Positions 6,001-64,000 of a stretch of 64,000 nt of DNA are shown piece after piece; the first letter of the stretch is position 1; the number at the start of each line of letters is the position of its first letter. The notes under the pieces were generated by a model. That model made no database searches and was not told the DNA's origin. It worked only from the letters and a program-made list of their open reading frames with translations. Source of the DNA: Octopus bimaculoides (lineage: Eukaryota); assembly GCF_001194135.2 (NCBI RefSeq), contig NC_068986.1:77275003-77339002 (forward strand), given 5' to 3'. Position numbers and translations under genes: made by a program.

Positions 6001-9000
6001 CACAAACTGGTGTTAACACCTGTTGTACTCTTGAGGCTAGTTATGAAATTTCATTACTCATTGCTAAATGTGGAAAAAATCATACTATTGGAGAGGATTT
6101 AATTAAACCATCAATATCAGCATTTTTTAAAACAGTCCTGGAAAAAGATAAGTTGTTCAAGCCATGCTACTCGGTAACAATACTGTTAGAAGAATAGATG
6201 AAATGAGTGAAGATATTGAAGTACAACTTATGGAAAAGCTGAAATCAAAAAAATTCTCATTACAAATGGATGAGTCAACTCTGAGACAGCGAGGTCGTAT
6301 TGCTAACCTATGCAAAATATATTGATAAAGGTGAATTTGCTGGAGAAATCATATTCTGCGAATCATTAACAAATATCTTTGAAAAACTGAATATGTTAAA
6401 TAAACAACTTCAAGGATCAAATAAAACTCTTATTGATGCTAAGATGAAGATATTTGGCTTTGTTACATTCATTGAGTTATGTCAAAAGAATATTTTTGCC
6501 AAAATTTTTAACCAGTTTCATTGGCTAAAAAAAATGTGTGGTGACCGATACTGCTGTACTTGTCATTGTGGATCATATGAAAATATTGGCCTCTGATTCG
6601 AAAGAAAAATTTTCTGATTTAAAACAAATTGATTTTCCAACTTGGGTGCTGCTGCCAATGCTAGTGGATATATGATGTTTCGATACAGTACCAAGAAGAA
6701 CTCTCGGAAATGCAAAATGATGAGGCAGTGAAAACTTTATTCAATATAAAAGGAGTGATGTCATGGCTTTGTGATGAGACAAGAACTAAATGCCCAAATT
6801 CAACCAACTTTGCAAAAAAATTGTTGTTACCGTTCCCATCTTCATATTTAGCTGAATGTGGCTTTAGTGCTGTAAATGATTTGTTATTGAAGAAAAAAAA
6901 AATCAACTGGATATCACTAAATGAGAAGACTTGAGACTAAAGCTGACTAAATTGGTGCCTAATCTAAAATCTCTCTGTAGCAGGCATGAAGCACAAGGAT
7001 CTCCCTAACTTTAGTATACTTATTTTATATATCTGCATTTCAGTTTTCTTGCTCGACACTGTTCTGTTTGGTATTATGATAGCGTACTTTGTCGTCGGCC
7101 CGACTGGATGAGTGACTGAACTGTGTGCCTCACCAACTGCCCCACTCATTATGTCTGTTAACTATTTATTTGTAGTGAAACAGCCCACTTCTCTGGCTTG
7201 GAGGTGTCCTCCACAACACCTCCAACTTGAGATTTTTTTCTACACAGTATATTTTTTTTCTCCCTCTATCACATAGAACAAAATCTTTTTTCAATCTCTT
7301 ATCACAGAGAAATTTCATACAGTTCTTCGATATACACCTGTCAACAATTATTTTTTTTCAACCCTATCTATTACACAGAACAAAATCCTTTTTTTAATTT
7401 CTAATCACAGAAGCATTAAATTATTACATAGTTCTCTGACACACATCCATTGGCAATTATTATTATTCTTATTTTTCAACTCTATTACACATTCAAACCA
7501 CGCTATTCGGATATATTCCACATACTAACACATGAGCTACCTGACTGAATTCCTTCATCAGACTTGTATTATTATGAAAGAAATATGTAATCAATCTGCC
7601 CATTTTCAGTTCCACAAATACACAATGTTTTGTTCTGGTCAAATGATTCTCTTTAATTTCACTTTGTCACAGTATTTCTTTGCTATTTTTACTTTTCTTT
7701 TTTCAAAGGAGTTTGCTGTTATTTCTGCACTCCTATTTTTTGTAACTTTCAAAGCTAAACGCAAAACAACAAAAAATGAATACTTTAATTTCACATAAAT
7801 TACTTAGTCATATTACTGCAGGAAATTACTCTGAAAGAAATTTTTGCAGAAAGGTGAATAGATTGATTACATATTTCTTTCGTTATGTTATCGCAGTTTT
7901 GTGAGATTTGGCTGTTATTTCTAGCATATGGATAGCCTGCTTGAAGGGCAAGGACGTAGAATTGGGAGGAGAGGGTGTTAGGNNNNNNNNNNNNNNNNNN
8001 NNNNNNNNNNNNNNNNNNNNNNNNNNNNNNNNNNNNNNNNNNNNNNNNNNNNNNNNNNNNNNNNNNNNNNNNNNNNNNNNNNNNNNNNNNNNNNNNNNNN
8101 NNNNNNNNNNNNNNNNNNNNNNNNNNNNNNNNNNNNNNNNNNNNNNNNNNNNNNNNNNNNNNNNNNNNNNNNNNNNNNNNNNNNNNNNNNNNNNNNNNNN
8201 NNNNNNNNNNNNNNNNNNNNNNNNNNNNNNNNNNNNNNNNNNNNNNNNNNNNNNNNNNNNNNNNNNNNNNNNNNNNNNNNNNNNNNNNNNNNNNNNNNNN
8301 NNNNNNNNNNNNNNNNNNNNTCTAAGTTATGGGTGAAAACCTCGGATCTTGTGAATTTTCCAAAGTCCTTTCCCCACCCCTTCGGAAAAGATTTTCCCCT
8401 CAAATTTCTTTATTACTGTAACGTTTGTTGTTTGAAAGGCATTTATATGAAATTTCATTAAAAAACCATTTTCCTAAAAGTTTTGAGAGAAAAACTTGGA
8501 TCTTGTAAATTTTCTGAAGTCCTCTCCCCACCGCCCCTATTACTTCCTGCGCATTTTTGTTTTCATATTCGTTTCCTACACATTTTTTACACCCGTTGCA
8601 CTATTTTTTTTTTTTTTTTCGTTTCTGGGTAATATTGTAAACATTTCTCTTTAATTTTTAATTCATCACCAAATTTTTCCTTGTATTCTGCGGTCATTGT
8701 TGTATCCTGCATATTTTTGAATTCTTGTCACCAAATTTCTTCTTGTATCCTGCGATCATTGTTGTATCCTGCGTATCTTCGAAGACTCATCGCCACTGTT
8801 GTGTCTTGCGTGTTTTTGAATTCTTGTCACCACTTTTACAAAGTGTTATGATTTTAAATATTTTCCCCTACATGTTGTTTAAATCCTTGTCGCCACTGTT
8901 GTCTTGCTTGACCCTGTTCTGTGTGGTATTATGACGACTTATTTCGTTGTTGGCCTGACTGGCCCAAACTGTGAGTGGCCAAACGGCGTGCCTCGCCGAC

Positions 9001-19500: not shown

Positions 19501-21749
19501 ATCTTTCATTGGCATGGAAATGTTTCTAACTTTCCTTGGTCAAAAGTGAGTTGCCAGCCTCATCTTTAAGATTGGCACTGGTCGTTATTTGTCTGCCAAT
19601 CAGATGGTCTGTAGTATCAAAATATCTGCAGATCATTGGTGTTGGAAACGTTCTCTACAGCAACCTGATCATTTAATCATGACCTAGATTTGCCATGCAG
19701 ACTCTCCTCTTTGTATTAATGAGGCATTGATGGTCAGTTGTTTGTGAAGAGAGTTGTGGTCTGCTTTTACTGTTCTCTTCTGTGTGACTTGCTCTAGCCA
19801 TGATTCTTTGTGGAGATGTGACTGCTTCTTTCTTTTTCCCCATGCAGGCTGTTGGTTTTCAGTATTTTGATGATTGACTACAGATGCTTTATTAGTTGAT
19901 GTAATTAGATCTGGATGTTGTAGAAAGGATGATGGTTGATGTAGAAAGCTCTAAAGGAGCAATAATCAGCAAACTACAAATGCAGTTTTGGGAGACATGT
20001 ATATAACATTCTCCATGTTTTTCACTTTGAGTCCAAATGATTTTTTGGTCTGTACATTTCTTAACCTGGGTACATCATAATCAGACCGACAGTTTCAGAA
20101 ATTGAAAATACCACAGCAACTGAACTATTTAGTGTATGCATAGAAAAATAAATGATAAACTAAGTTGATGGGTGGAGACAAAAACTCCTCCCCAAAACTA
20201 GAAGTGATGTCAAGAGAGCCCAGATGTGTGTTGTTGATGAGAAGAAAATGGCTTGCATTTTTCTGGGGGTGGATGGCGGTCATCAGAATTTAATTTCTCT
20301 ACTTGTTTTGAATTCAAGTGAGTTAAGAGTAGTATTTTTTTCTCCATGAGCACCCTGGAATCTCTGCAGAAGGTTGATATTCAAAGGTAGAATGAGATTG
20401 TTAAAGTACAGTTTGTTACTGGTTTCCTTGATTACATTTTAGTAGAGATGCTGTAATTGCCAGATAGTGGAACCATGATTGTGGTAGATTTGGTGACCAG
20501 TGCTAGATTATTAAACAAAACTCAAAATCTTGCAGCAGTGGCCATGATGGGACAATATAGTGAGATGACATACTTTAAGCAGAAATAAAAAGTGGGACAA
20601 CTGAACATTCCAAAAGAGGTGTTTTAAGTGTTGAGGGCCACATATGGTCAAGGAATTTCAAGAGCCCAGCCTAAATTGTTTTACTACTGATGGAATAGGA
20701 CAGGTTTTGTAGCCAAGGATATGGTCAGTCATGTGCCAAGAGCCACCCCATCATCAAGTACAGGCATTTCTTTATTGCCCACAATGAAAGTTTTGGTGAG
20801 GGGGAAAGAGGGGATCGATATTATCGATATGGATTGCATAGTCACTACAATGACTAAAGATGATACACCAGACGAGAGCCCATCTCACAGCCGGGATGAC
20901 CTTAATTATCGTTAAAAAAAAAAGAAACAACTAAAAAAGATGAGACATATTTTCCTGTTTCTTCGACAATCATCGCTTTTTGTCATAGTCGTAATATTTC
21001 TTTTTTTTATTTAATTTTACGTCATTAGGTCATATATTTGGGGAAAATATTGATGTATCTTCCTCTTCGTCCAAAAAGAAAAAAAAGAAAGTTTGGAGCC
21101 ACTCACTTCTTCTCTCTCACCCATCCACTCTTCATCCAANNNNNNNNNNNNNNNNNNNNNNNNNNNNNNNNNNNNNNNNNNNNNNNNNNNNNNNNNNNNN
21201 NNNNNNNNNNNNNNNNNNNNNNNNNNNNNNNNNNNNNNNNNNNNNNNNNNNNNNNNNNNNNNNNNNNNNNNNNNNNNNNNNNNNNNNNNNNNNNNNNNNN
21301 NNNNNNNNNNNNNNNNNNNNNNNNNNNNNNNNNNNNNNNNNNNNNNNNNNNNNNNNNNNNNNNNNNNNNNNNNNNNNNNNNNNNNNNNNNNNNNNNNNNN
21401 NNNNNNNNNNNNNNNNNNNNNNNNNNNNNNNNNNNNNNNNNNNNNNNNNNNNNNNNNNNNNNNNNNNNNNNNNNNNNNNNNNNNNNNNNNNNNNNNNNNN
21501 NNNNNNNNNNNNNNNNNNNNNNNNNNNNNNNNNNNNNNNNNNNNNNNNNNNNNNNNNNNNNNNNNNNNNNNNNNNNNNNNNNNNNNNNNNNNNNNNNNNN
21601 NNNNNNNNNNNNNNNNNNNNNNNNNNNNNNNNNNNNNNNNNNNNNNNNNNNNNNNNNNAGTGTGAATAGCAATATAAAGGCAATTGATGGAAGATATGTT
21701 GTTCTGTAGAGTGAATAGTACTGAAATATGAATGTCAGTTCTGGTAATC

Positions 21750-26570: not shown

Positions 26571-27224
26571 GCAAACAATCTTTACTCCAAAGTACTGTTG
26601 CTGAATATCTCTCATGAGATTTACAAACAGTAATTTTCTAATTTATAGATCAGTGACAAGTTGTCACTTTGAAAACTATNNNNNNNNNNNNNNNNNNNNN
26701 NNNNNNNNNNNNNNNNNNNNNNNNNNNNNNNNNNNNNNTATTTTCAGTGAGAAGATTTTTTTTTTTTTTGAAGGGGAAACACTCCGAGAGTGCTCTATCT
26801 GAGTGGTTGTATTTGCTGTGTCCCTCTTGTCACTTTGTGAGGGAGATGCAAATGAAGTGCTGGGATAGGTTTAAGAGAAGTGTCATTGAGTAGACAGATC
26901 ACTCACATTTATGTAGAGCTGTGTGTTCATTAAGAGAAGTAAGACTGTGACCTTTCAAGATGTTTGGTAAGAAAGATAGCACTTTATGCTCATTACTAGA
27001 AATCATTTGATCTGGGTAGAAAGATGTATGCTTGGTAAGTTCACCATCATGAATTTTTTTTTTTTTTTTTTTTTTTTCAGTAAAATAGTTTTTAACTATT
27101 GATGGTGAGATACTATGGATATATTTTCTCAGTAAACTTTCCTTGCAGTGAACATTCATGTTCAACTTTCTTTGGCGAATTGGTGGCAGTGAACTTTCTC
27201 TGTGGTAAATTGATGGTGGTGGAC

Positions 27225-29959: not shown

Positions 29960-30256
29960 ATTCTGTTTCTGTATTTATATTCTTTTGGTACTCTATATAA
30001 TACTATCTCTTCTTCCTCTGATTTTCAGCCCCTCCTTCATTCCTTTGTTCTTCACCTCTCTTCAACTTCACCTCTGGAGGAGAAACTTTCCTCTTCTGTT
30101 TTTCTTGTCACCATTTCCATTGCCTCTTTTTTTCTTTTTCAACTTCTCCGGTGGAGAACCCCTCCTACTTTTTCTTTTCCATGGTTTCACCTCCACGAAC
30201 TCCTCTTCTGTATCCACTGTTTCAGTTCCTTCTTCACATTCCACCATGTCTGCCTC
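29960..30256 (-). mobile_element. Tx1/L1-like ORF1 C-terminal piece (part of mosaic)
   Basis: E-rich, then EFVEVKPWKRKSRR, K-rich tail; fused directly to the post-RT segment. Confidence 0.5.
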
Positions 30257-31195
30257 TCTCCGCTCCAGCTTGTTCAGCCACAAACCAGGGCAAGGCACGA
30301 CGGTTAGGCAAAAGGTTATCACCGATGCTATGAACACCTGCGCAACTTCTGCCCTTCCCAACAAGGATAACCTCCCAGACTACTTCTGGGCTATCTCTGT
30401 CACCTTGCTCGCCACCTCACTCCAGTTCTTCTCCACCTGGAGGTCCGGTCCAACCCAGGCCCCAAGCATTTTAACCAGGCCCTCCGTCCAGTGCCCGATG
30501 ACGCTGTTGGGAGGCATTGACTTGCCTCTCCAGGTGCCGAGTTGCAAGCTGACTGATTTTTCCTGGTTAATTTTCACCCTGCCACCGTCTTGTATCCTTT
30601 GATGGTGTCTTCTATGCGAGGTAGATGCCCTTCATCCGACATGATGATGGTGACATCATCCGCATATGCCGTCACATTTCTCCCATAACAAAGATCATGT
30701 GGGTCCACCCCCCACATCCCTCAATTTCCGCAGCAATGGCTCGAGCGCCAATACATACAGAATCGGGGACAGGGCAGCCCTGGCAAACCGAACGCTCGAT
30801 TGCGATGGGGTTTGAGAAGAACCCATTTACCCAGACTATTGATTCGATATTACCGTACATGGCTTTAATCCAGCCTCGGGAGGTTGGGCCAAATCCGGCC
30901 GTCCGATGGACCGCCGCCAGGTATCTGTGGTCAACCCTGTTGAACGCCTTTGACTGCTCTAAATGCACCAGTGCCCCACTGTTGCCATGCATTTTACCCA
31001 TCCGCTCTATGGTGTATCGAATGAGGTGAAGATTGTCCTGTATCGTGCTTCTCCCACCAGGTCGCCCATGACAACCCTAACTCTCTTTGTGAGCACCTTG
31101 GCCAAAATCTTTAACTCTGTGTTTAGCAGAGTTATGGGCCTAAAGTTATTAACATTATCCCCCTTGCTCGGGTCTTTCCTAATCGGTGTCGTCAT
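30257..31195 (-). mobile_element. Tx1/L1-like RT segment b (part of mosaic)
   Basis: FRPITLLNTELKILAKVL; LEQSKAFNRVDH; YADDV; KINQEKS; RAEVAQVFIASVI; frameshifted. Confidence 0.85.
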
Positions 31196-32090
31196 CCAGA
31201 AAATGCTGTAAGGTATCCCCATGGTCCAACGTCCCATCCCTCCCGAACAACACGACAAAGTGCTTGTGAAAGGCCTTGCATATCTCCTCTTGTCCTTGGA
31301 TCTTCTGTCCGGACTCATCTGCCAAAGATCCAATTGTAGCATTGATGCCACGACGGGTTTCTTCCAAGTGAGCCCATCTAGCAACATTGATACCTTCACG
31401 GCCCATTGCACGTGTCCTAGAAGTCTTGTTCAGCTTCCAGTAGCCAGATCCCTGTCTATGTATCTTGTCTATATTCATCCTACATGTCACTAACTTGTGA
31501 TCTGTGTAGGGTACGTAGGTAAACTGTGGACAACTAAAACTATGTCTATCTCTAGTACTTACGACTATCCTGTCTATGTAAGACCTGACCATTCCGTTGT
31601 TTCTTGCCCAGGTCCACACTAGAACGTTTGGGTGGTCAAGTCTATATCGATCTGCCAGCCTGAAACGCTTCAGCAGATTGATGAGGCATGAGTTTCCCTT
31701 TATATCTTTTGAGCCCACGCTATCCAGGCGTGCATCCACATTGAAGTTACCTAGTACAACGACTGTCCTCGATGTCATCAGGAAATTCTCCAGGTGTTGA
31801 AAGAAGTCAACCCATTTGCCTGCATTATCAGGTGCGTGGATGCCCACCAGCCTGAAGGCCTTACCACTGTCTGTCAGATCCAGAACAAGCAACTTGCCTT
31901 CTGGATCCACGAAGATTGTACATGTCTGCATGACCAGGCTTTTTCGGATCAAGACAGCCACCCCTCCGCTTCCTCCCTCTCGGCTAGGAGAAATTATATT
32001 CTTGTAGCCGTTCAGGAGTGCCAAGAAGGCCTGCAGCTTGTCCAGCTTGGTCTCTGTAACAACCATCACATCTATATCATGTGGCCTTGT
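31196..32090 (-). mobile_element. Tx1/L1-like APE endonuclease plus deleted linker (part of mosaic)
   Basis: VVTETK; GGVAVL; LVGIHAP; GNFNV; SYIDRI; TDHKLV; GYWKLN. Confidence 0.88.
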
Positions 32091-32094
32091 ATTT

Positions 32095-32830
32095 TTTTGA
32101 TGGCGTCTTCTACCAAAGGTAGCTGCCCTTCGTCCGACACGATGATGGTGACATCGTCCGCGTATGCCGTCACGCCTCTTCCATAACACAGATCATGAGG
32201 ATCGCCCCCAGTCGCCTCCAACCTTTGCAGTAATGGCTCAAGAGCCAGTACGTACAGAAGCAGAGCCAGGAGAAAAACCTGTCGCACCGAACCCTCAATC
32301 TCAAATGCCTTTGAGAAGAAACCATTCACCTGGACCACAGACTCGATGTTGCTATACATAGCATTGATCCAGCCACGAAAGGTTGGCACCAGTCCAGCAG
32401 CCGTGAGGACAGCCTCTAGATACCAATGGTCCACCCTATCAAATGCCTTAGACTGGTCCAAATTCACCAGTGCACCACCCTTGCCAGGAACTTTACTAAC
32501 CCGATCTAAGGTGTAGTGTACAAAGTGAAGATTGTTGTGTATCGTCCTTCCTAGGATGGCACAGGTTTGTGTCTCCCCAACCAGGTCACCCTCGACAACT
32601 CTAACTCTCTTGGCTAAAATCTTTAACTCTGTATTTAACAGAGTTATGGGCTGAAAATTATTAATGATATCTCCCTTGCTCAAGTCTTTCCTGACGAGTG
32701 TCACAACTCCCCAGCTCACAGATTTGGGAATTCTCTCATTCTGCTGCCAGTTCACATACACACCAGCCAGTATTTCCTCGAACAATTCTGGCATACTTTT
32801 ATAAAATTCGTAAGGAGGCATGGCAAGCAT
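32095..32830 (-). mobile_element. Tx1/L1-like RT segment a (part of mosaic)
   Basis: PYEFY; FQPITLLNTELKILAK; LDQSKAFDRVDH; YADDV; open frame. Confidence 0.9.
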
Positions 32831-32833
32831 AAA

Positions 32834-35460
32834 AATTATGCCATAGCGCAAAGTTTATATAGGACAAATAAGAGGAGGCTCCTTGCAATGATATTAGAGG
32901 AGGATGTAGATCAGGGATGCCCAATCCCTATGTATGCCATAGAGGATTTTTATGGTGGTAGATTTTCTACACCTGGCCCTGAGGTGGACCTTTCTGGCAG
33001 TCCTTCCTCCTCCATTGTCGATAGCGGTCCTATCTTGAGACCATTTTCGTTGGAGGAAATAAAAATTAGCCGTAGAAAGATGGATACCACCTCAGTGGCG
33101 TGCCCTGATAGTCTCACAGTTAGTGAAATTAAAGCAGTGGACCCATCCATCCTTGCTAACATTTGTAATTGCATGTTGCTGGCCAGGAAGGTTCCCGATA
33201 TCCTGAAGCAGGGTAGATCCGTTCTCATCCCTAAGAGGGCGGAAGATCCTTATGATCTTACCAGTTGGCGACCGCTAACGATATGCTCTGCGGTATATCG
33301 ACTTTTTTCAAAAATGGTCGCCAAACGCATGCTTCAGGTAACTCCCCTTAACCCGATACAAAGAGGTTTTAACCAGTCCGACGGCTGCAGTGAGAACACA
33401 TTTCTCCTTCAACAGCTCGTCGGTTGTGCGATGGGAAGACCAGCACAACTGAGAATACCGCGGTTAGAAGTGGCTTTCATGGATCTCGCCAAGGCCTTCG
33501 ACACAGTCTCACACTCTTTGATGTATGTGGGACTGCGGAGACTTGGGTTTCACGAGCACGTAATAGTGCTCGTGGAGGGGATTTATGAAGGTAGCACGAC
33601 TAAATTCTCAGTAGGAGGACAGATTAGTGAGCCCATTGATATTCACCGGGGTGTCGGACAGGGGGACGCGCTCTCGCCGATCCTCTTCACTATTGCAATT
33701 GATCCGCTGCTAGATACATTATCTGGTAGCGGGGATTTGTGTGTGGAGAGGATCCGGATGGATGGAATCGCGTATGCGGATGACTTGGCCCTAGTCACGG
33801 TGACGCGTGGGGGTCTCCAGGCTCTAGTAAATAGATGCTTGGAGTTCTTCCGCGATGTCGGGTTGAGGCTTAATGTCGGCAAGTGTGTGTGGTTCTCCAT
33901 CCGCGGCTTGAGCAAGACCTACCTTGTCAACGACAGTACCCCGCCGAGTGTTGATGGTATCACTATTAAGTCAGTAGAACCAGGGGAGAAAGTTTCATAT
34001 CTAGGATTAAATATACCCACGTGGAATTCTGACTCGAATCGGGAATTTACTTTAGATTCAGTGGAGCAAGTGTCGCTAGATATCAGTAGGATAACTAGGA
34101 CTCCGCTGAAACCCTGACAGAAATTCCTCTTGCTGCAGCAACTTTATCTGCCGAGACTTTTTTATAGTCTCGTACAGATACTGCCGTCAAGAGGAATTCT
34201 CGAGAGGCTTGACACGGCCATCTGCGTGGGTGCTAGAAAAATATTACATCTCCCCGAAACTACTTCCTCTTCTTTTCTTTACTGCAGCCGGCTTGATGGC
34301 GGGTTAAGTCTTCACCAAATGGTGAGACTTATACCAAAATGTGTCATCCGCCAAAATCTTCGCCTGCTGACCTCGGGGCATGTCTCAGTTAGGAAAGTTG
34401 CGGATTCTGCAGGATTAGCCGAACAGAACCAGCAACTTATAGTTTCCTTCAATTTGCCGTTGCTACCTGAGGGCGCTACAGAATACGACCCTGATATCCG
34501 GCTGATCCATACCCATAGATGGGCGGCTCAGCCGGTGCATGGTGTGTGTGTGGCGGCGTACCGAGGGGACACAAATGGCAATAGTTGGATTAGTAGGCCG
34601 GGTAGGATTGCTGAGGGGTGCTACTTGGGATTACTCAAGATGCGCTCCAACATATCCTAACCGTGAAACTCTGACGCGTGGAGCCCTAGGGGATCCCACG
34701 TGTCCGAGATGTAGATTAGGAGCGGAGACAATATCCCACGTCAGTGGAGTCTGTGTTGCTCTTAAAGCACCACGGCTTGCCAGACATAATAAAGTCTGTA
34801 ATCTGGTGGTGAAAGAGGCTGTAGCTCATGGTTGGAGTGTCAGTGTGGAGCCTTCCTATATTATAGGAGGCTCCAGGCTGATACTCGACCTGGTATTTAG
34901 CTGTCCGGATAAAGTAGTGGTCATTGACGTGACTGTCCGATTGGAGCAGGGAGATGCTTTGAAAGAGGCGTCTCTTGAGAAAGTGCATAAATACCGTCCG
35001 CTCGTTCAAATGCTTTTGCAGGACTTGGACCGGCTGGTAGAAGTGCATGGACTCCCAATCGGTGCCTGTGGTGCCTGGTGCCGACCTGCGAGTGTGGCAC
35101 TGGACACCCTGGGCATTCGTGACAGACCATTTCGGCGACTACTCAGCCGGACAGTTATGATATGTACATATAACATGCTGAGAGACTAGCTCCAGCATGT
35201 GAGGACTTAGGTATATACTGATCTTAGATCTAAAATACTTGAAAAGACAAAATAAAAAGAAAACCGATTAGGACAATCTGCAACCCACAAAAATAATACC
35301 ACACATCTTATTTTAGTTTGTTTTATTATTTTACAGAAGTGGTGTCGCCTCGGCTTTGAGCTGGGCCTTATGTCAAAAGTGTGCGGCACCAGGGCAAAGG
35401 ATTCAGTGGGACCACCCACAGAAAATAAAGGGAAAATGAAGACGAAAGTCAAGAAAGAAA
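32834..35460 (+). mobile_element. R2 non-LTR retrotransposon, 5'-truncated (RT, CCHC, restriction-like endonuclease, 3' UTR); one nonsense codon (34115) and one frameshift (~34650)
   Basis: YAIAQSLY; WRPLTI; QRGF..DGCSEN; DLAKAFDTVSH; GVGQGDALSP; YADDL; PLKP*QK; CPRC..ETISHVSGVC; RHNKV; DLV..VIDVTV..KVHKY; stop at 35189; 271-nt 3' UTR with A-rich end abutting the 28S R2 site. Confidence 0.93.
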
Positions 35461-37041: not shown

Positions 37042-37501
37042 GAAGGCACATGGCTCAGTTGTTAGTGTCAGGTTCACAATCATGAGGTAGTGCATTCAAT
37101 TTCCAGACTGGGCTGGGTATCGGCCTTGGGCAAGACACTTCATATTGTGTTGCTCCAATTCACTCAGCTGTAGAAATGAGTTGTGATATCACTGGTGTCA
37201 AGCTGTATTGGCCTTTGTCCTTCCCTTGGACAACATCGGTGGTATGGAGAGGGGAGGCTGGTATGTGTGGGCAATTTTGAGCATGGCCATTGCCAGTATC
37301 GCCTGACTGGCCTTTGTGCGGGTGACACGTAAAAGCACCTATTACACTCTTGGAGTGGTTGGCGTTAGGAAGGGCATCCAGCTGTAGAAACTCTGCCAAA
37401 TCAGATTGGAGCCTGGTGTAGCCTTCGGGCTCCACCAGTCCTCAGTTAAATCGTCCAACCCATGCTAGCATGGAAAGCGGACGTTAAACGATGATGATGA
37501 T
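37042..37501 (+). mobile_element. tRNA-derived SINE head/body joined to an RTE-type 3' end with (GAT)n tail
   Basis: First ~230 bp match the SINE at 46670; the remainder matches the RTE 3' UTR at 52392-52620 (reverse). Confidence 0.75.
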
Positions 37502-40500
37502 TATATATATATATGTATATTTATATATGATTCTATTTTACCAATGCTTAGAAAACTCTCCTAGAGGAGAAACTGGTATAAAAGTAAAACATTTAATGTT
37601 TTTAATTAAATTATGTACTTCACTGAGTCCTTTTGATAGTTTGTGGTCTACATTGATCTTTTTAACGAGCATTAACAAAAAATTTATATATTTATTGCCA
37701 GATTCATAAGTGAGGCAATTCAGATAGAAAATAAACTGCTAAAATACCAATATATGAAGAAAATTAGAACAAAAAAAATTCTTATTTTTACTGATTAGTA
37801 AGTTTTTAGCTTTCTTTCATTTGAACCAATTTTTTCCATAGCTGCAAACAAGTTTATGATTATATTGAAACAACAGTTAAAACACTCCTATATGAAAAAT
37901 CCTTGCCTGCTCAATTCCTTTATTTTTAAGGCACTAATTGAACTGTTTAATATTACAGCTGAAGCAAAAATTGGATGTTCATTAATTTTTAAAAATAAAT
38001 ATTCTGTTCAACTAGAACATTTATATGCATATCAACTCTATTTCAATAGACAAGTATTTCGATGAGTGAGAAAGTGAATGTGAGTCGGTGTGTCTTAAAT
38101 GTGTTGTGTTGAATCAGCATACAAAGGTCTATATACAAGCACAGATGGACCATATGCTTATGTATTTGAGAAAAAAAAAAGACTTCACAAGGTTGAGCTC
38201 ACATGCCTTTATCAAAGTGTTTGATTGAAATTGAAAGAAGTGAATGGCTCAAGCATGGTGTTAAGTTTTTCATGCTAAGTGACAATAGAATTATAGGTCC
38301 AGAGACATGGTAGTGGTATGTGAAAACTCAAAAGCTAAATGATAACAATATGTGTACTTATGAAAGAAAAGCTTAAATCTATTGTTGCATTCAATTTTGT
38401 ATAATTTATGAGACTCTAGATGAATGCATATGGTTTTATTTGCAAAATTCTTTGCTCAACAGTCTCAAACAAAAAGTATCTAGCTTTCACTCAGTGTTGC
38501 CATTTTAGAGAACTGATGTGGGCTGAAGCCAATAGTGGTGAATTGCAAAGTGAGACCATTATTGCTTGTATTCTATTAATTGATGTATTGATAGGAGTCT
38601 AACTATCAGTAGAAGGGTAGGTACAGATGGCTACTGCAAACCATAGGAATAGTGAAGTTGAATCATCTCATGATTGTTTGATAAGTGACGGATTTGTCAT
38701 CATACAGTTCTATCATTTTTAAGTTCTGAAACAATGCCTTTGAATAGGGTTAGTGACTGGAATTAATCCTGCTTGATATTATTCATCAATTATATCGGTT
38801 GTCTACAATATTGATAGTCTTTATCATTTTCTTTTTTCATCTGATGGGATTAGGCAAAAAAAAATGTGACAGAGTTTACCTTGGTGATCTTATCCATCAT
38901 GTATCTTAAACATCTTTTCAAGAACACAGTTAAGCCCTACTGAAATAAAGGGCTTGATTAAATTGACTGAATTGTCTCCCAAAATATGTGATTTAGTGCC
39001 TATATGGAAAGCAATTATATTGCTTGTTTAAATTTTCACATATTTAAAACCAGATATGTCTATCCATTACTTTAGTAAACAAGTGGAATTGTCAAGTAGA
39101 TAAGATAGTGAACATTGTAGGTGGTTTCTTTAGAATTTAGTATCTTGTCAGTAAATACTTCTTTACCAAGAGAATTGAAGCTAAGTTGTGCGATAGGCTA
39201 GAGTATTTATCTAAGTGCTTACTGGAGTAACAGCCAGAGTTTTAAGCACTGGACCTAAATGCTTTTTTAAATTCAAGTATATATTTTTAGGAAGGAAATC
39301 ATAACAAAATTTGTACATTTCAGTTTATTTCCAATTTGATACTTGGCAAAACGACTTTTCTCCCAGCAGTCAATGGAATGTAATGTAAACATATACTCAG
39401 ACACACACAGTAAGGAAAAAAAAAACAAAAAAACTATAACTTTCTACCTCAAATACTGATATATTTCTAATTTATCATTTGCTCAATGCCATTTAACCCA
39501 ATTACTCCTACATTTGTAACTTCTTCAAAATGAAAACGATTCAGAATTTTTTGTTGATAATTTGTATGTTGGATTATTGATATTTATTAGGAGTTACATT
39601 TTTTTTTTTTTACATTAATATCAGACAAGAAAAACTGAATTAAAAAATTTTTTTTTTTTTTTGTATTCTTATCAAAACTCTGCAAATATTCAAACCACAA
39701 GTTTTATTTACAATCTTTTGTATTTCATATGTAAAATCATTCTAAATTGCTAATGAGATATCAATTAAAAAAAATATTTTGTAAAAAAAATATCTAATTT
39801 CTGTTTTATTTTTATGACAACATTAATTTTGTAAAAAAATACTGAATATTTGTATATATATATATATTTTAATTAACTATTATTAAAATCTATACTTGGC
39901 CTTTTTCTGTTCATCAGTTTTGAATTTGGCTCTTTGACTAAAAAATAATTTCAACATTACTCATTGAGCAAATGTCTAATATATAGTAATATGAATGGAT
40001 AAATATCTCACTTGCATAGAAAGACTGCTGCAGCATTTTTTTTTTGTTTTTTATCTATCTGCTCAAATTACTGCCTGCATATATGGTAGAATCTATGATG
40101 ACAACGTAGCTCATCTATAAAGTATCTTAGGCCACACAGGAGTAATGACATGACAGACATGGTAATACCAAATAAAATACCTTTGTCATGTTTTGATTTC
40201 ACATCCTTCCACCACTATAAATGTTTACCTTTTTAACCACTTGGGAGATGGAAAAAAGTTAATAAAATAAGCACTTGTATTACATTGAGATCAATTCAAT
40301 CAGTTGTACTCTGCTTGGTTAGTAATCAATACTGATACCTAACCATGACATATTGCTGCAAATTTGAGGGACAGGCATATCCCACTCCCTATTTCATAGG
40401 TACTTTATTTCATTGACCTCACACTTTCTGGAAAGGTAAAATTGGCCTTGATAAGATTTGAACCCAAGTCATTATCTTTGATGTCCTCATTTGAGTATTG

Positions 40501-42177: not shown

Positions 42178-62691
<20,514 letters not shown>

Positions 62692-63148
62692 CTGCATAAC
62701 AAAACAATAAAGAACAAAATAAAATAATAAAAATACTAAAGCAATAAGAAAAAAAAAAGAACAAAATAAAAATTAATTAAAATATCATTTTTACTCCTGG
62801 TTTGATAAAAGTTAATAAAATTGTTAAGAATTAATAAAATTAAGTAAAATATTACTCTTAAAACATTTTTATAATTCAAATTTTTCTTATATTGGTTTCC
62901 ACAAGAAACACACTTGGTTTATTTACTTATTTTGTTTTTATGGTTGGTGACTGAAGTTGGTATGGAGTGAAGATATTTCTTAGGTTAATGAAGAGGTTCT
63001 GCTGAAAGTATCATGGCAAACATAACTTAGCATGCCCCGCTAAATAAGGGCATCTACTCGTAAAGTCTCCAGGTAAAACTTCAGAAACACAACCAAATAT
63101 GCAAAAGAGCCAGCACAGGCAAATATGGTAGCCATTCAGTATACAGTG

Positions 63149-63419
63149 TGTGGTATGACGTCAGTGTCTGGGGAGGCTGACCGGAAGGGGGAAAAGAGCA
63201 GAGAGAGCCTCGATCAGGATTTGTGCCCTTTTCGAATGGGGTTGTGGTCAGGACAAGACGTGTTAAGCGACGGTCTAGGTTTGGGAGAAGCAGCTGCTAT
63301 TCCTGGTGTACTTTGGGTCGGGGTAAGCTTCAAGGATTGGATACCGCAAGACAGACTCGCAGTCGACGAAAGGAAAACCGAGGTAAGGCGATTACATCTA
63401 CTCGTACGCACACACCACA
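63149..63419 (+). mobile_element. 5' LTR (271 bp) of a Gypsy-type LTR retrotransposon
   Basis: Starts TGTGGTATG and ends CACACCACA (TG...CA, 8/9 inverted terminal match); GC/CpG-rich; lies directly upstream of gag. Confidence 0.8.
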
Positions 63420-63435
63420 AGCTATTTCGGCACCA
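63420..63435 (+). promoter_or_regulatory. Putative non-canonical primer-binding site AGCTATTTCGGC(ACCA), complementary to tRNA-Phe(GAA) nt 1-12
   Basis: Reverse complement GCCGAAATAGCT is the conserved 5' end of metazoan tRNA-Phe (recalled); abuts the LTR-terminal CA with no spacer. Confidence 0.65.
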
Positions 63436-63454
63436 CGTGCAGAAATTCGCCGTG

Positions 63455-64000
63455 ATGGCAGCCACCAAGATTAGGATCGCCAGCGATGTGATCAGGCCTT
63501 TTAATGGCGAAGATGTGATGGCTTGGNNNNNNNNNNNNNNNNNNNNNNNNNNNNNNNNNGGATACGAAAAATTAGGCTCGTTGGCAAGCTGCAAGGAATA
63601 AGTGATGTGGCGAGTCTCATGGCTCTATACTTGGAAGGGAGCGCCCTGACCCTCTACCTAGAAATGGACAAGGAAGAAAGATTAAGTGCAGAGAACGTCA
63701 AACGGAGGTTGAGAGAAGCGTATATGGAGAGCGAGTACACTGCCTTCGTAAAACTAGGAACGAATAGATGGGGGGGAGAACAGGTGGATGAGTACGCGGC
63801 GGAAGTGCGAAGACTGGCCACGCTGGCTGGGTTTACAGGAGAAGGCCTGGACAGAGCGGCGCGGCTGGCGTTTGTAAATGGATTCCCCGACAACGTAGGG
63901 ATCCGATTGCAGCAGTTGCCTGGCGGGAGAAAGATGGCGCTCAGCGAGCTAGTAGCGCAAGCTCGCGTGTTGACACAGCATGTCGGACGGAAGTGGATAG
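63455..64000 (+). CDS. Gypsy-type gag, runs off the window end (interrupted only by the 33-N gap)
   Basis: MAATKIRIASDVIRPFNGEDVMAW|IRKIRLVGKLQGISDVASLMALYLEGSAL...RWGGEQVDEYAAEVRRLATLAG...FVNGFPD...LQQLP; no stop after the gap. Confidence 0.85.

Follow-up and report, generated by a model that had tools for sequence, protein, structure and literature searches.

A candidate primer-binding site complementary to the 5' end of tRNA-Phe in an octopus LTR retrotransposon and its conservation among relatives

Retroelement lineages are defined in part by the way in which they prime reverse transcription, and few modes of priming are recognized. [quoted passage not shown] Among plants, half-tRNA priming by 1/2 tRNA-Met or 1/2 tRNA-Ile is assigned to the Osser, Bryco, and Bianca lineages, and a 2019 survey of 13,863 plant elements listed only the tRNA 3' end, half-tRNA, and self-priming, plus elements for which none was found (PMC6317226). 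The self-priming element Tf1 has an 11-nt PBS, and its RNase H cuts an RNA duplex after nucleotide 11 of the self-primer (PMC4600332), while tRNA-Phe is known to prime some endogenous retroviruses (PMC7472051). Here, we analyzed a long terminal repeat (LTR) retrotransposon that begins near the end of a 64,000-nt stretch of Octopus bimaculoides contig NC_068986.1 (positions 77,275,003 to 77,339,002 of the forward strand, hereafter the window), in which the 12 nt that follow the 5' LTR are complementary to the 5' end of tRNA-Phe(GAA). An earlier note on this DNA had known of no description of priming from such a site; our full-text literature searches likewise returned no PBS complementary to a tRNA 5' terminus, although older papers may contain one.

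Anatomy of the octopus element and its match to tRNA-Phe

The part of the element that lies in the window (63149 to 64000) consists of the following features.

63149 to 63419, plus strand: 5' LTR, TGTGGT...ACCACA, 271 bp, delimited by its TG...CA inverted repeat and by the LTR ends of relatives
63156 to 63163, plus strand: cAMP response element (CRE)-like palindrome TGACGTCA near the LTR start, read from the sequence
63420 to 63431, plus strand: candidate PBS AGCTATTTCGGC, a perfect complement of tRNA-Phe(GAA) nucleotides 1 to 12 (GCCGAAAUAGCU)
63432 to 63454, plus strand: leader of 23 nt between the PBS and the start of gag, read from the sequence
63455 to 64000, plus strand: 5' part of the gag open reading frame (ORF), with its ATG at 63455, recognized from its translation and homologues and leaving the window at its end

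The inverted repeats at the LTR termini, TGTGGT and ACCACA, are 6 nt each. We placed the LTR end from the TG...CA inverted repeat together with the LTR ends of relatives, which are set by target-site duplications; the LTR start is uncertain by 2 nt, the sequence there being TGTGTGG. There is no second LTR copy within the 64-kb window, and the 3' LTR lies beyond base 64000. AGCTATTTCGGC abuts the LTR with zero spacer, and the stretch from the LTR end to the gag ATG is free of TGG. Thus, the 271-bp LTR, the spacerless 12-mer, and the lack of a TGG-type PBS were found just as the earlier note had described them.

The 5' sequence of tRNA-Phe was taken from published reagents, namely, a probe for the 5' part of Drosophila tRNA-Phe-GAA, GCTCTCCCAACTGAGCTATTTCGGC (PMC7038984), and a forward primer for human Phe(GAA), GCCGAAATAGCTCAGTTGGGAG (PMC10505166). 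Both agree with the start GCCGAAATAGCT that had been given for metazoan tRNA-Phe, and the fly and human tRNAs are identical over nucleotides 1 to 12. Because probe and primer confirm this sequence, the proposed perfect complementarity to nucleotides 1 to 12 stands at 12 of 12 positions. The predicted free energy of the PBS:tRNA RNA duplex is −18.7 kcal/mol for the window element, and the predicted duplexes as a group range from −18.7 to −23.5 kcal/mol. By our estimate, the chance of a perfect 12/12 match to any of about 50 tRNA 5' ends at this one position is approximately 3e-6. The exact 12-mer occurs once in the window, compared to about 0.008 occurrences expected for any given 12-mer on both strands, while up to 2 mismatches give 4 matches against 2.55 expected; therefore, only the exact match at the LTR-adjacent position is meaningful. 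We also looked for extra pairing of the remainder of tRNA-Phe with U5 or the leader and found nothing consistent, with z values from −2.5 to +1.6 and a different region in each element.

The gag ORF is broken by an assembly gap of 33 N (63527 to 63559), and the frame resumes from 63562; since the gap deletes part of the gag N terminus, the intactness of the window copy cannot be judged. The part behind the gap has 43 homologues of about 250 amino acids with 43 to 58% identity, and many of them carry CCHC zinc knuckles, which identifies them as gag proteins. A Pfam search with the window gag fragment gave no match, nor did an Rfam scan of 62800 to 64000, and a tRNA gene search of the window found none.

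Conservation of the 12-mer among relatives

Relatives were found through gag and pol homologues in marine metagenome contigs, Logan assemblies, and three named genomes, and the LTR-gag junctions of 13 independent elements were aligned. Four loci hold full-length elements of about 4.2 to 4.5 kb, with LTR pairs that are 97 to 100% identical and with 5-bp target-site duplications, as follows (loci are numbered with the prefix L).

L001: target-site duplication ACTGC
L136, Argonauta hians: target-site duplication TCAGT
L137, Oratosquilla oratoria: target-site duplication CAGAA
L138, Petrolisthes manimaculis: target-site duplication TAAAC

In all four, AGCTAT starts at the base right after the LTR end that the duplication defines, so the LTR pairs and duplications of the relatives put the boundary where the earlier note had drawn it. 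Moreover, the pattern (LTR end)|AGCTAT-NNN-GGC is present in 13 of 13 elements, with 9 of its 12 positions invariant, whereas the columns flanking the 12-mer are unconserved and nothing is kept past GGC. Invariance of the site in other copies, which had been posed as a test, thus held for AGCTAT and GGC and for the absence of a TGG-type site from the junction (0 of 13 elements) and did not hold for the triplet at positions 4 to 6, which varies. No other candidate PBS was found in the 4 to 50 nt that separate the LTR from the start of gag. The gag proteins of the aligned elements share only 39 to 68% identity, and their LTRs and leaders cannot be aligned; that the 12-mer is conserved despite such divergence indicates that it is under strong selection.

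The LTRs of the family begin with TGTGG or TGTTG and end with (T/C)ACA, and a conserved polypurine-like tract, AGATCA(A/G)G..G, precedes the 3' LTR in relatives. The tetranucleotide (T/C)ACA precedes the 12-mer in 12 of the 13 elements; the exception is Argonauta, with CAAG. Judged by the perfect 5-bp duplication TCAGT, the Argonauta LTR ends in ...ATCAAG and not in CA (L136 5970 to 5988 and 10026 to 10036), and its complementarity to tRNA-Phe extends to 13 nt, the last LTR base included. In L001, L136, and L138, the two LTRs are 100% identical; the ORFs of L136 are intact as well, so such elements must have been active recently. Among sequenced animals, Argonauta hians (with intact ORFs) and Petrolisthes manimaculis hold copies with fully identical LTRs.

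Variation within the 12-mer is confined to the triplet that pairs with acceptor-stem positions 4 to 6. On the tRNA, the partners of the invariant bases are G1-C2-C3 and A7-U8-A9-G10-C11-U12; of these, U8 and G10 are near-universal. Four forms of the triplet were seen.

TTC: window element, Argonauta element, and L007; implies GCCGAAAUAGCU, the canonical tRNA-Phe start
TTT: L009; one CpG-to-TpG step away from TTC, with G-U pairing retained
CTA: mantis shrimp, porcelain crab, and six elements from Tara Oceans or other marine samples; implies GCCUAGAUAGCU
CCC: L001 and L006; implies GCCGGGAUAGCU

All variants fit GCC-NNN-AUAGCU, the form that tRNA-Phe 5' ends take. The window and Argonauta elements have an identical TTC site with a gag identity of only 39%, and the CTA site is common to eight distinct elements, two of them from identified crustaceans. 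The PBS of L009 (9978 to 9989) is AGCTATTTTGGC, and this copy has no detectable LTR pair; its single change is consistent with decay after inactivation. With regard to tRNA-Phe as the partner, the earlier proposal fits the TTC elements, while the sites of most relatives match starts of the form GCCUAGAUAGCU or GCCGGGAUAGCU and not canonical tRNA-Phe. Support for host tRNAs that match the CTA and CCC variants is indirect. Among bacterial tRNAs that start with GCCTAGATAGCTCAG, 71 of 78 are Phe(GAA), which makes it a real tRNA-Phe start in other organisms. A eukaryote-type tRNA-Phe with the same start (GCCTAGATAGCTCAGTTGGGAGAGCG...) was found in one viral contig, L139; this tRNA-Phe, at 2329 to 2403 on the minus strand, begins with GCCTAGATAGCT and has a eukaryote-like D-arm, GGGAGAGC. 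L139 is a 134-kb IMG/VR contig with a tight cluster of tRNAs (Ser, Phe, Ser, and Thr). A scan of viral contigs for GCCGGGATAGCTCAGTTGGGAGAGC gave no match, and no eukaryote-type tRNA-Phe gene starting with GCCGGGA or GCCGAAA was present in them.

Two further motifs were noted in the LTRs and leaders. Several CTA-type elements carry TAGGCTAGC in the leader or the LTR (L008, about 225 to 240; L011, about 450 to 458; L012, about 2420 to 2430; L002, about 335 to 345), and in L008 it lies within TAGGCTAGCCTA, a perfect palindrome of 12 nt; the motif may represent a dimerization-type palindrome or a partial duplication of the PBS. The CRE-like palindrome TGACGTCA of the window LTR is a possible promoter element. 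The same octamer is found in the Argonauta hians LTR (L136 5788 to 5795), the two LTRs being otherwise unrelated, and L008 carries TTGACGTCG in this comparison; the palindrome may be a promoter element that these LTRs have in common.

Proposed priming mechanism and rival explanations

On these grounds, we favor, at a probability of roughly 60%, the reading that the PBS of the whole family pairs with the first 12 nt of a host tRNA, namely, tRNA-Phe(GAA) for the window element and another cephalopod element. The identity of the primer, the cut between nucleotides 12 and 13, and the nuclease, for which the RNase H of the element is the candidate, are what we infer beyond the complementarity itself. 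The PBS would invade the acceptor stem and D-stem of the tRNA, displacing the 3' acceptor strand and the D-stem partner, and pair with nucleotides 1 to 12. The tRNA would then be cut between nucleotides 12 and 13, within the D-stem, either before annealing, which would supply a fragment resembling a 5' tRNA-derived fragment (tRF-5), or after it, at the end of the RNA duplex, for which the closest precedent is what the RNase H of Tf1 does to the self-primer. Reverse transcriptase (RT) would extend the 3'-OH of U12 into U5, and plus-strand strong-stop DNA would copy the 12 RNA bases and run off the natural 5' end of the tRNA. The helix should end at nucleotide 12 (13 in Argonauta) because the LTR end ACA cannot pair with tRNA nucleotides 13 to 15 (CAG). 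Run-off at the tRNA 5' end would explain why conservation halts at tRNA nucleotide 1 in every element, and plus-strand copying of tRNA bases would explain how the PBS tracks the host tRNA. For the fuller proposal, that a large retroelement lineage, active recently in cephalopods, crustaceans, and marine plankton, primes from the 5' 12 to 13 nt of tRNA-Phe, released by a D-stem cut that is probably made by its own RNase H where an RNA-RNA duplex ends, and finishes plus-strand strong-stop synthesis by run-off at the tRNA 5' end, we consider the odds to be about even.

Several points weigh against pairing with the 5' end of a host tRNA as the mode of priming. The whole mechanism is deduced from DNA, and we know of no direct precedent for a D-stem cut that yields a 12-nt primer. 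A tRNA-Phe gene was absent from every eukaryotic locus fetched, the window included. The 13-nt pairing in Argonauta means that the 3' end of the primer may not be fixed at nucleotide 12. Furthermore, the CTA site pairs with canonical tRNA-Phe at only 10 of 12 positions; insects start with the canonical GCCGAAA, so this site requires a crustacean tRNA with GCCUAGA, which is predicted. Finally, the PBS type partly follows the gag tree, so the variants could have been inherited and need not reflect adaptation to the host tRNA.

A different way to read the site is self-priming of the Tf1/sushi type, in which the 12-mer would pair with the 5' end of the RNA transcribed from the element itself before a cut, its likeness to a tRNA being incidental. 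A short PBS (12 nt versus 11 nt in Tf1) that abuts the LTR is what self-priming elements have (PMC4600332), and, in Argonauta, the LTR stretch GCCGTGATAGCA could pair with the PBS of the same element at 10 of 12 positions. However, in 13 tests at 12 loci, the best LTR complement to the PBS was no better than that of shuffled LTRs; the fraction of shuffles that reached the observed self-primer score ranged from 0.07 to 1.0 and was 0.78 for Argonauta. No self-primer candidate covaries with TTC, CTA, or CCC, and self-priming leaves unexplained why unrelated LTRs keep one tRNA-like 12-mer. This alternative, which the earlier note had asked to be checked, thus found no support, and we regard it as very unlikely. 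Less improbable, though still doubtful, is that the 12-mer is a cis-element serving recognition of the U5 end by RT or integrase (IN), packaging, dimerization, or strand transfer, with a coincidental tRNA match and priming by other means. Conservation by itself is no proof of tRNA pairing, the tRNA for the commonest variant (CTA) is only predicted in its hosts, and the partial agreement of PBS type with the gag tree suits a cis-element too. Nonetheless, coincidence would have to produce a 12/12 match with an estimated chance of about 3e-6 at this single position, and it would have to place the invariant bases where tRNA 5' ends are conserved and the variable bases at acceptor-stem pairs 4 to 6. 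In addition, the three variants all keep GCC-NNN-AUAGCU, and the 4- to 50-nt interval from LTR to gag offers no alternative PBS for priming by other means.

We also consider it unlikely that the primer is some other RNA ending in ...GCCNNNAUAGCU-3', such as a trimmed 5' tRNA half, a preexisting tRF-5, or the transcript of a tRNA-derived short interspersed nuclear element (SINE), with no RNase H cut of an intact tRNA. The sequence evidence for such a primer is the same as that for a tRNA cut in the D-stem, and tRNA-derived repeats are common in these genomes, as exemplified by the tRNA-like unit beside the L137 element. This is a variant of 5'-tRNA priming that differs in the source of the 3'-OH, and the data do not separate the two. 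The last alternative is a canonical 3'-end PBS that was missed through a misread LTR boundary or strand. ACCA follows the 12-mer in the window (63432 to 63435), and over 11 nt ATTTCGGCACCA is identical to the presumed 3' end of tRNA-Phe; on the minus strand, the first 11 nt of TGGTGCCGAAATAGCT complement that end. However, gag lies downstream on the plus strand, which makes the minus orientation wrong, and ACCA occurs in 0 of 12 relatives, which have AAGA, CATT, ACGA, CTTG, AAGG, GTTT, and the like instead; ACCA is therefore probably a coincidence. The boundary itself is tied to target-site duplications in four relatives, and TGG is absent from the interval between the LTR and gag, so that we find this explanation hardly credible. 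The minus-strand TGG-type reading (TGGTGCCGAAA) was discarded for the unconserved ACCA and the plus-strand gag.

Classification, surroundings, and comparison with known priming systems

The family is large and is spread among marine invertebrates, including cephalopods and crustaceans. Its elements of about 4.2 kb encode a gag of about 250 amino acids with two zinc knuckles, and pol. A gag profile search yielded 269 clusters (50% identity) at an E value of ≤1e-30, and pol relatives number more than 600; a gag profile scan of viral contigs gave no match, and one of metagenomes gave only one locus. As the window stops short of pol, we examined the pols of three relatives (L007 802 to 3603, L136 6656 to 9652, and L011 1189 to 4104). 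Pfam matches give the order protease (PR)-RT-RNase H-IN, with an aspartyl protease, RVT_1, DUF7047, RVT_3/RNase_H, Integrase_H2C2, and rve. DUF7047 between RT and RNase H is a strong match in all three, whereas RVT_1 is weak and falls under the curated cutoff in two of them; RNase H matches RVT_3/RNase_H, and the Gypsy-type RNase H family is absent from the Pfam matches. No chain named Ty3 is among the PDB matches listed, and the best of these for the integrase family profile is 5cz2 ("Pol polyprotein"; E value, 5e-16), which we take to be a retroviral integrase, that of mouse mammary tumor virus (MMTV). The earlier assignment to a Gypsy lineage therefore agrees with the pol order only, since RT, RNase H, and integrase were no closer to Ty3 than to retroviruses in our searches. 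BEL/Pao was rejected, as Peptidase_A17, DUF1758/DUF1759, and DUF5641 were all absent at an E value of ≤1 from the three pols and from two gags; primer sites are not discussed in the BEL/Pao survey paper. Steamer-like (Mag) elements were ruled out as well, those having a single ORF and a tRNA-Asn PBS (PMC11046912).

The window as a whole is AT-rich, with SINE-like repeats and fragments of long interspersed nuclear elements (LINEs). About 400 bp upstream of the LTR, an ORF fragment on the minus strand (62291 to 62764) encodes an ABC-transporter transmembrane domain (Pfam ABC_membrane; 6.7e-12) and probably represents one exon from an ABCC-like gene of the host. A GC-rich block (30000 to 35200; 0.45 to 0.49 versus about 0.35) contains LINE-like pieces on both strands and direct repeats about 1.5 kb apart. 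The LINE-like pieces are as follows.

31179 to 32189, minus strand: Exo_endo_phos
32072 to 32851, minus strand: RVT_1
32888 to 34117, plus strand: RVT_1

A SINE-like repeat family is present in both orientations (37317 to 37504, 44960 to 45167, 56501 to 56595, 58629 to 58698, 60465 to 60652, and others), and its copy at 37453 to 37501 matches DNA flanking the Argonauta hians element (L136 5013 to 5062) at 88% identity, which by itself hints at an octopod source. Other runs of N, which are assembly gaps, lie at 7983 to 8320, 21140 to 21658, 26680 to 26738, 57436 to 57445, and 61865 to 61915. Beside the Oratosquilla element, at a distance of 196 bp and next to long microsatellites, ARAGORN called a tRNA-Val(CAC) on the minus strand (L137 5095 to 5167), which looks like a tRNA-derived repeat (a SINE head) rather than a standard tRNA gene; apart from it, no tRNA gene turned up in the eukaryotic loci.

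If priming from the tRNA 5' end is correct, tRNA-based priming would gain a third mode, in addition to those that use the 3' end and the anticodon-cut half, and a mechanistic bridge to self-priming of the Tf1 type. Annotation tools that seek complements of tRNA 3' ends would presumably score the family as lacking a PBS. Likewise, host defense by 3' tRNA-derived fragments directed against the PBS would miss these elements, while 5' fragments could act on them. The family would also offer a concrete substrate for RNase H cuts in RNA duplexes and for the origin of Tf1-type self-priming.

Compared to known systems, the family shares with canonical elements a host tRNA as the partner and a site directly 3' of U5; a canonical PBS, however, starts with TGG and pairs with the 3' 8 to 18 nt of the tRNA, including CCA, whereas here TGG is lacking and the match is to the other end of the tRNA. 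Like the "conserved hairpin site" of the fungal GalEa elements, a short lineage-wide motif replaces a recognizable PBS beside the 5' LTR (PMC5445492); the GalEa motif forms a palindrome or hairpin and matches no tRNA, while the present one is not palindromic and matches tRNA 5' ends. With half-tRNA priming, the family would have in common a primer drawn from a 5' tRNA fragment, and not from the 3' CCA end, and a tRNA that must be cut (PMC6317226). It differs in that nucleotides 1 to 12 (13 in L136) are paired, ending at nucleotide 1, which implies a D-stem cut and a primer paired over its whole length. Moreover, half-tRNA elements are Ty1/copia elements that use tRNA-iMet or tRNA-Ile, whereas here the integrase is C-terminal and the match is to tRNA-Phe. 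With the sushi group (Tf1, Tf2, and Tj1), the family shares a very short PBS (11 nt versus 12 nt here) that abuts the 5' LTR. As in Tf1, the primer would be a short RNA 5' end freed by endonucleolytic cleavage where an RNA duplex ends, a step established for Tf1 and only proposed here, and plus-strand strong-stop DNA would finish by run-off at an RNA 5' terminus (PMC4600332, with Levin 1995/1996 cited therein). In contrast to Tf1, which pairs with its own 5' end, the LTRs here lack a PBS complement better than those of shuffled LTRs, and the site matches the 5' end of a host tRNA; there is also no chromodomain match, and the pol is remote from Ty3-like proteins and gives no sign of kinship. 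Altogether, although it departs from each in the very feature that defines it, the family resembles a cross between half-tRNA priming, as in copia and Ty5, and the priming of Tf1.

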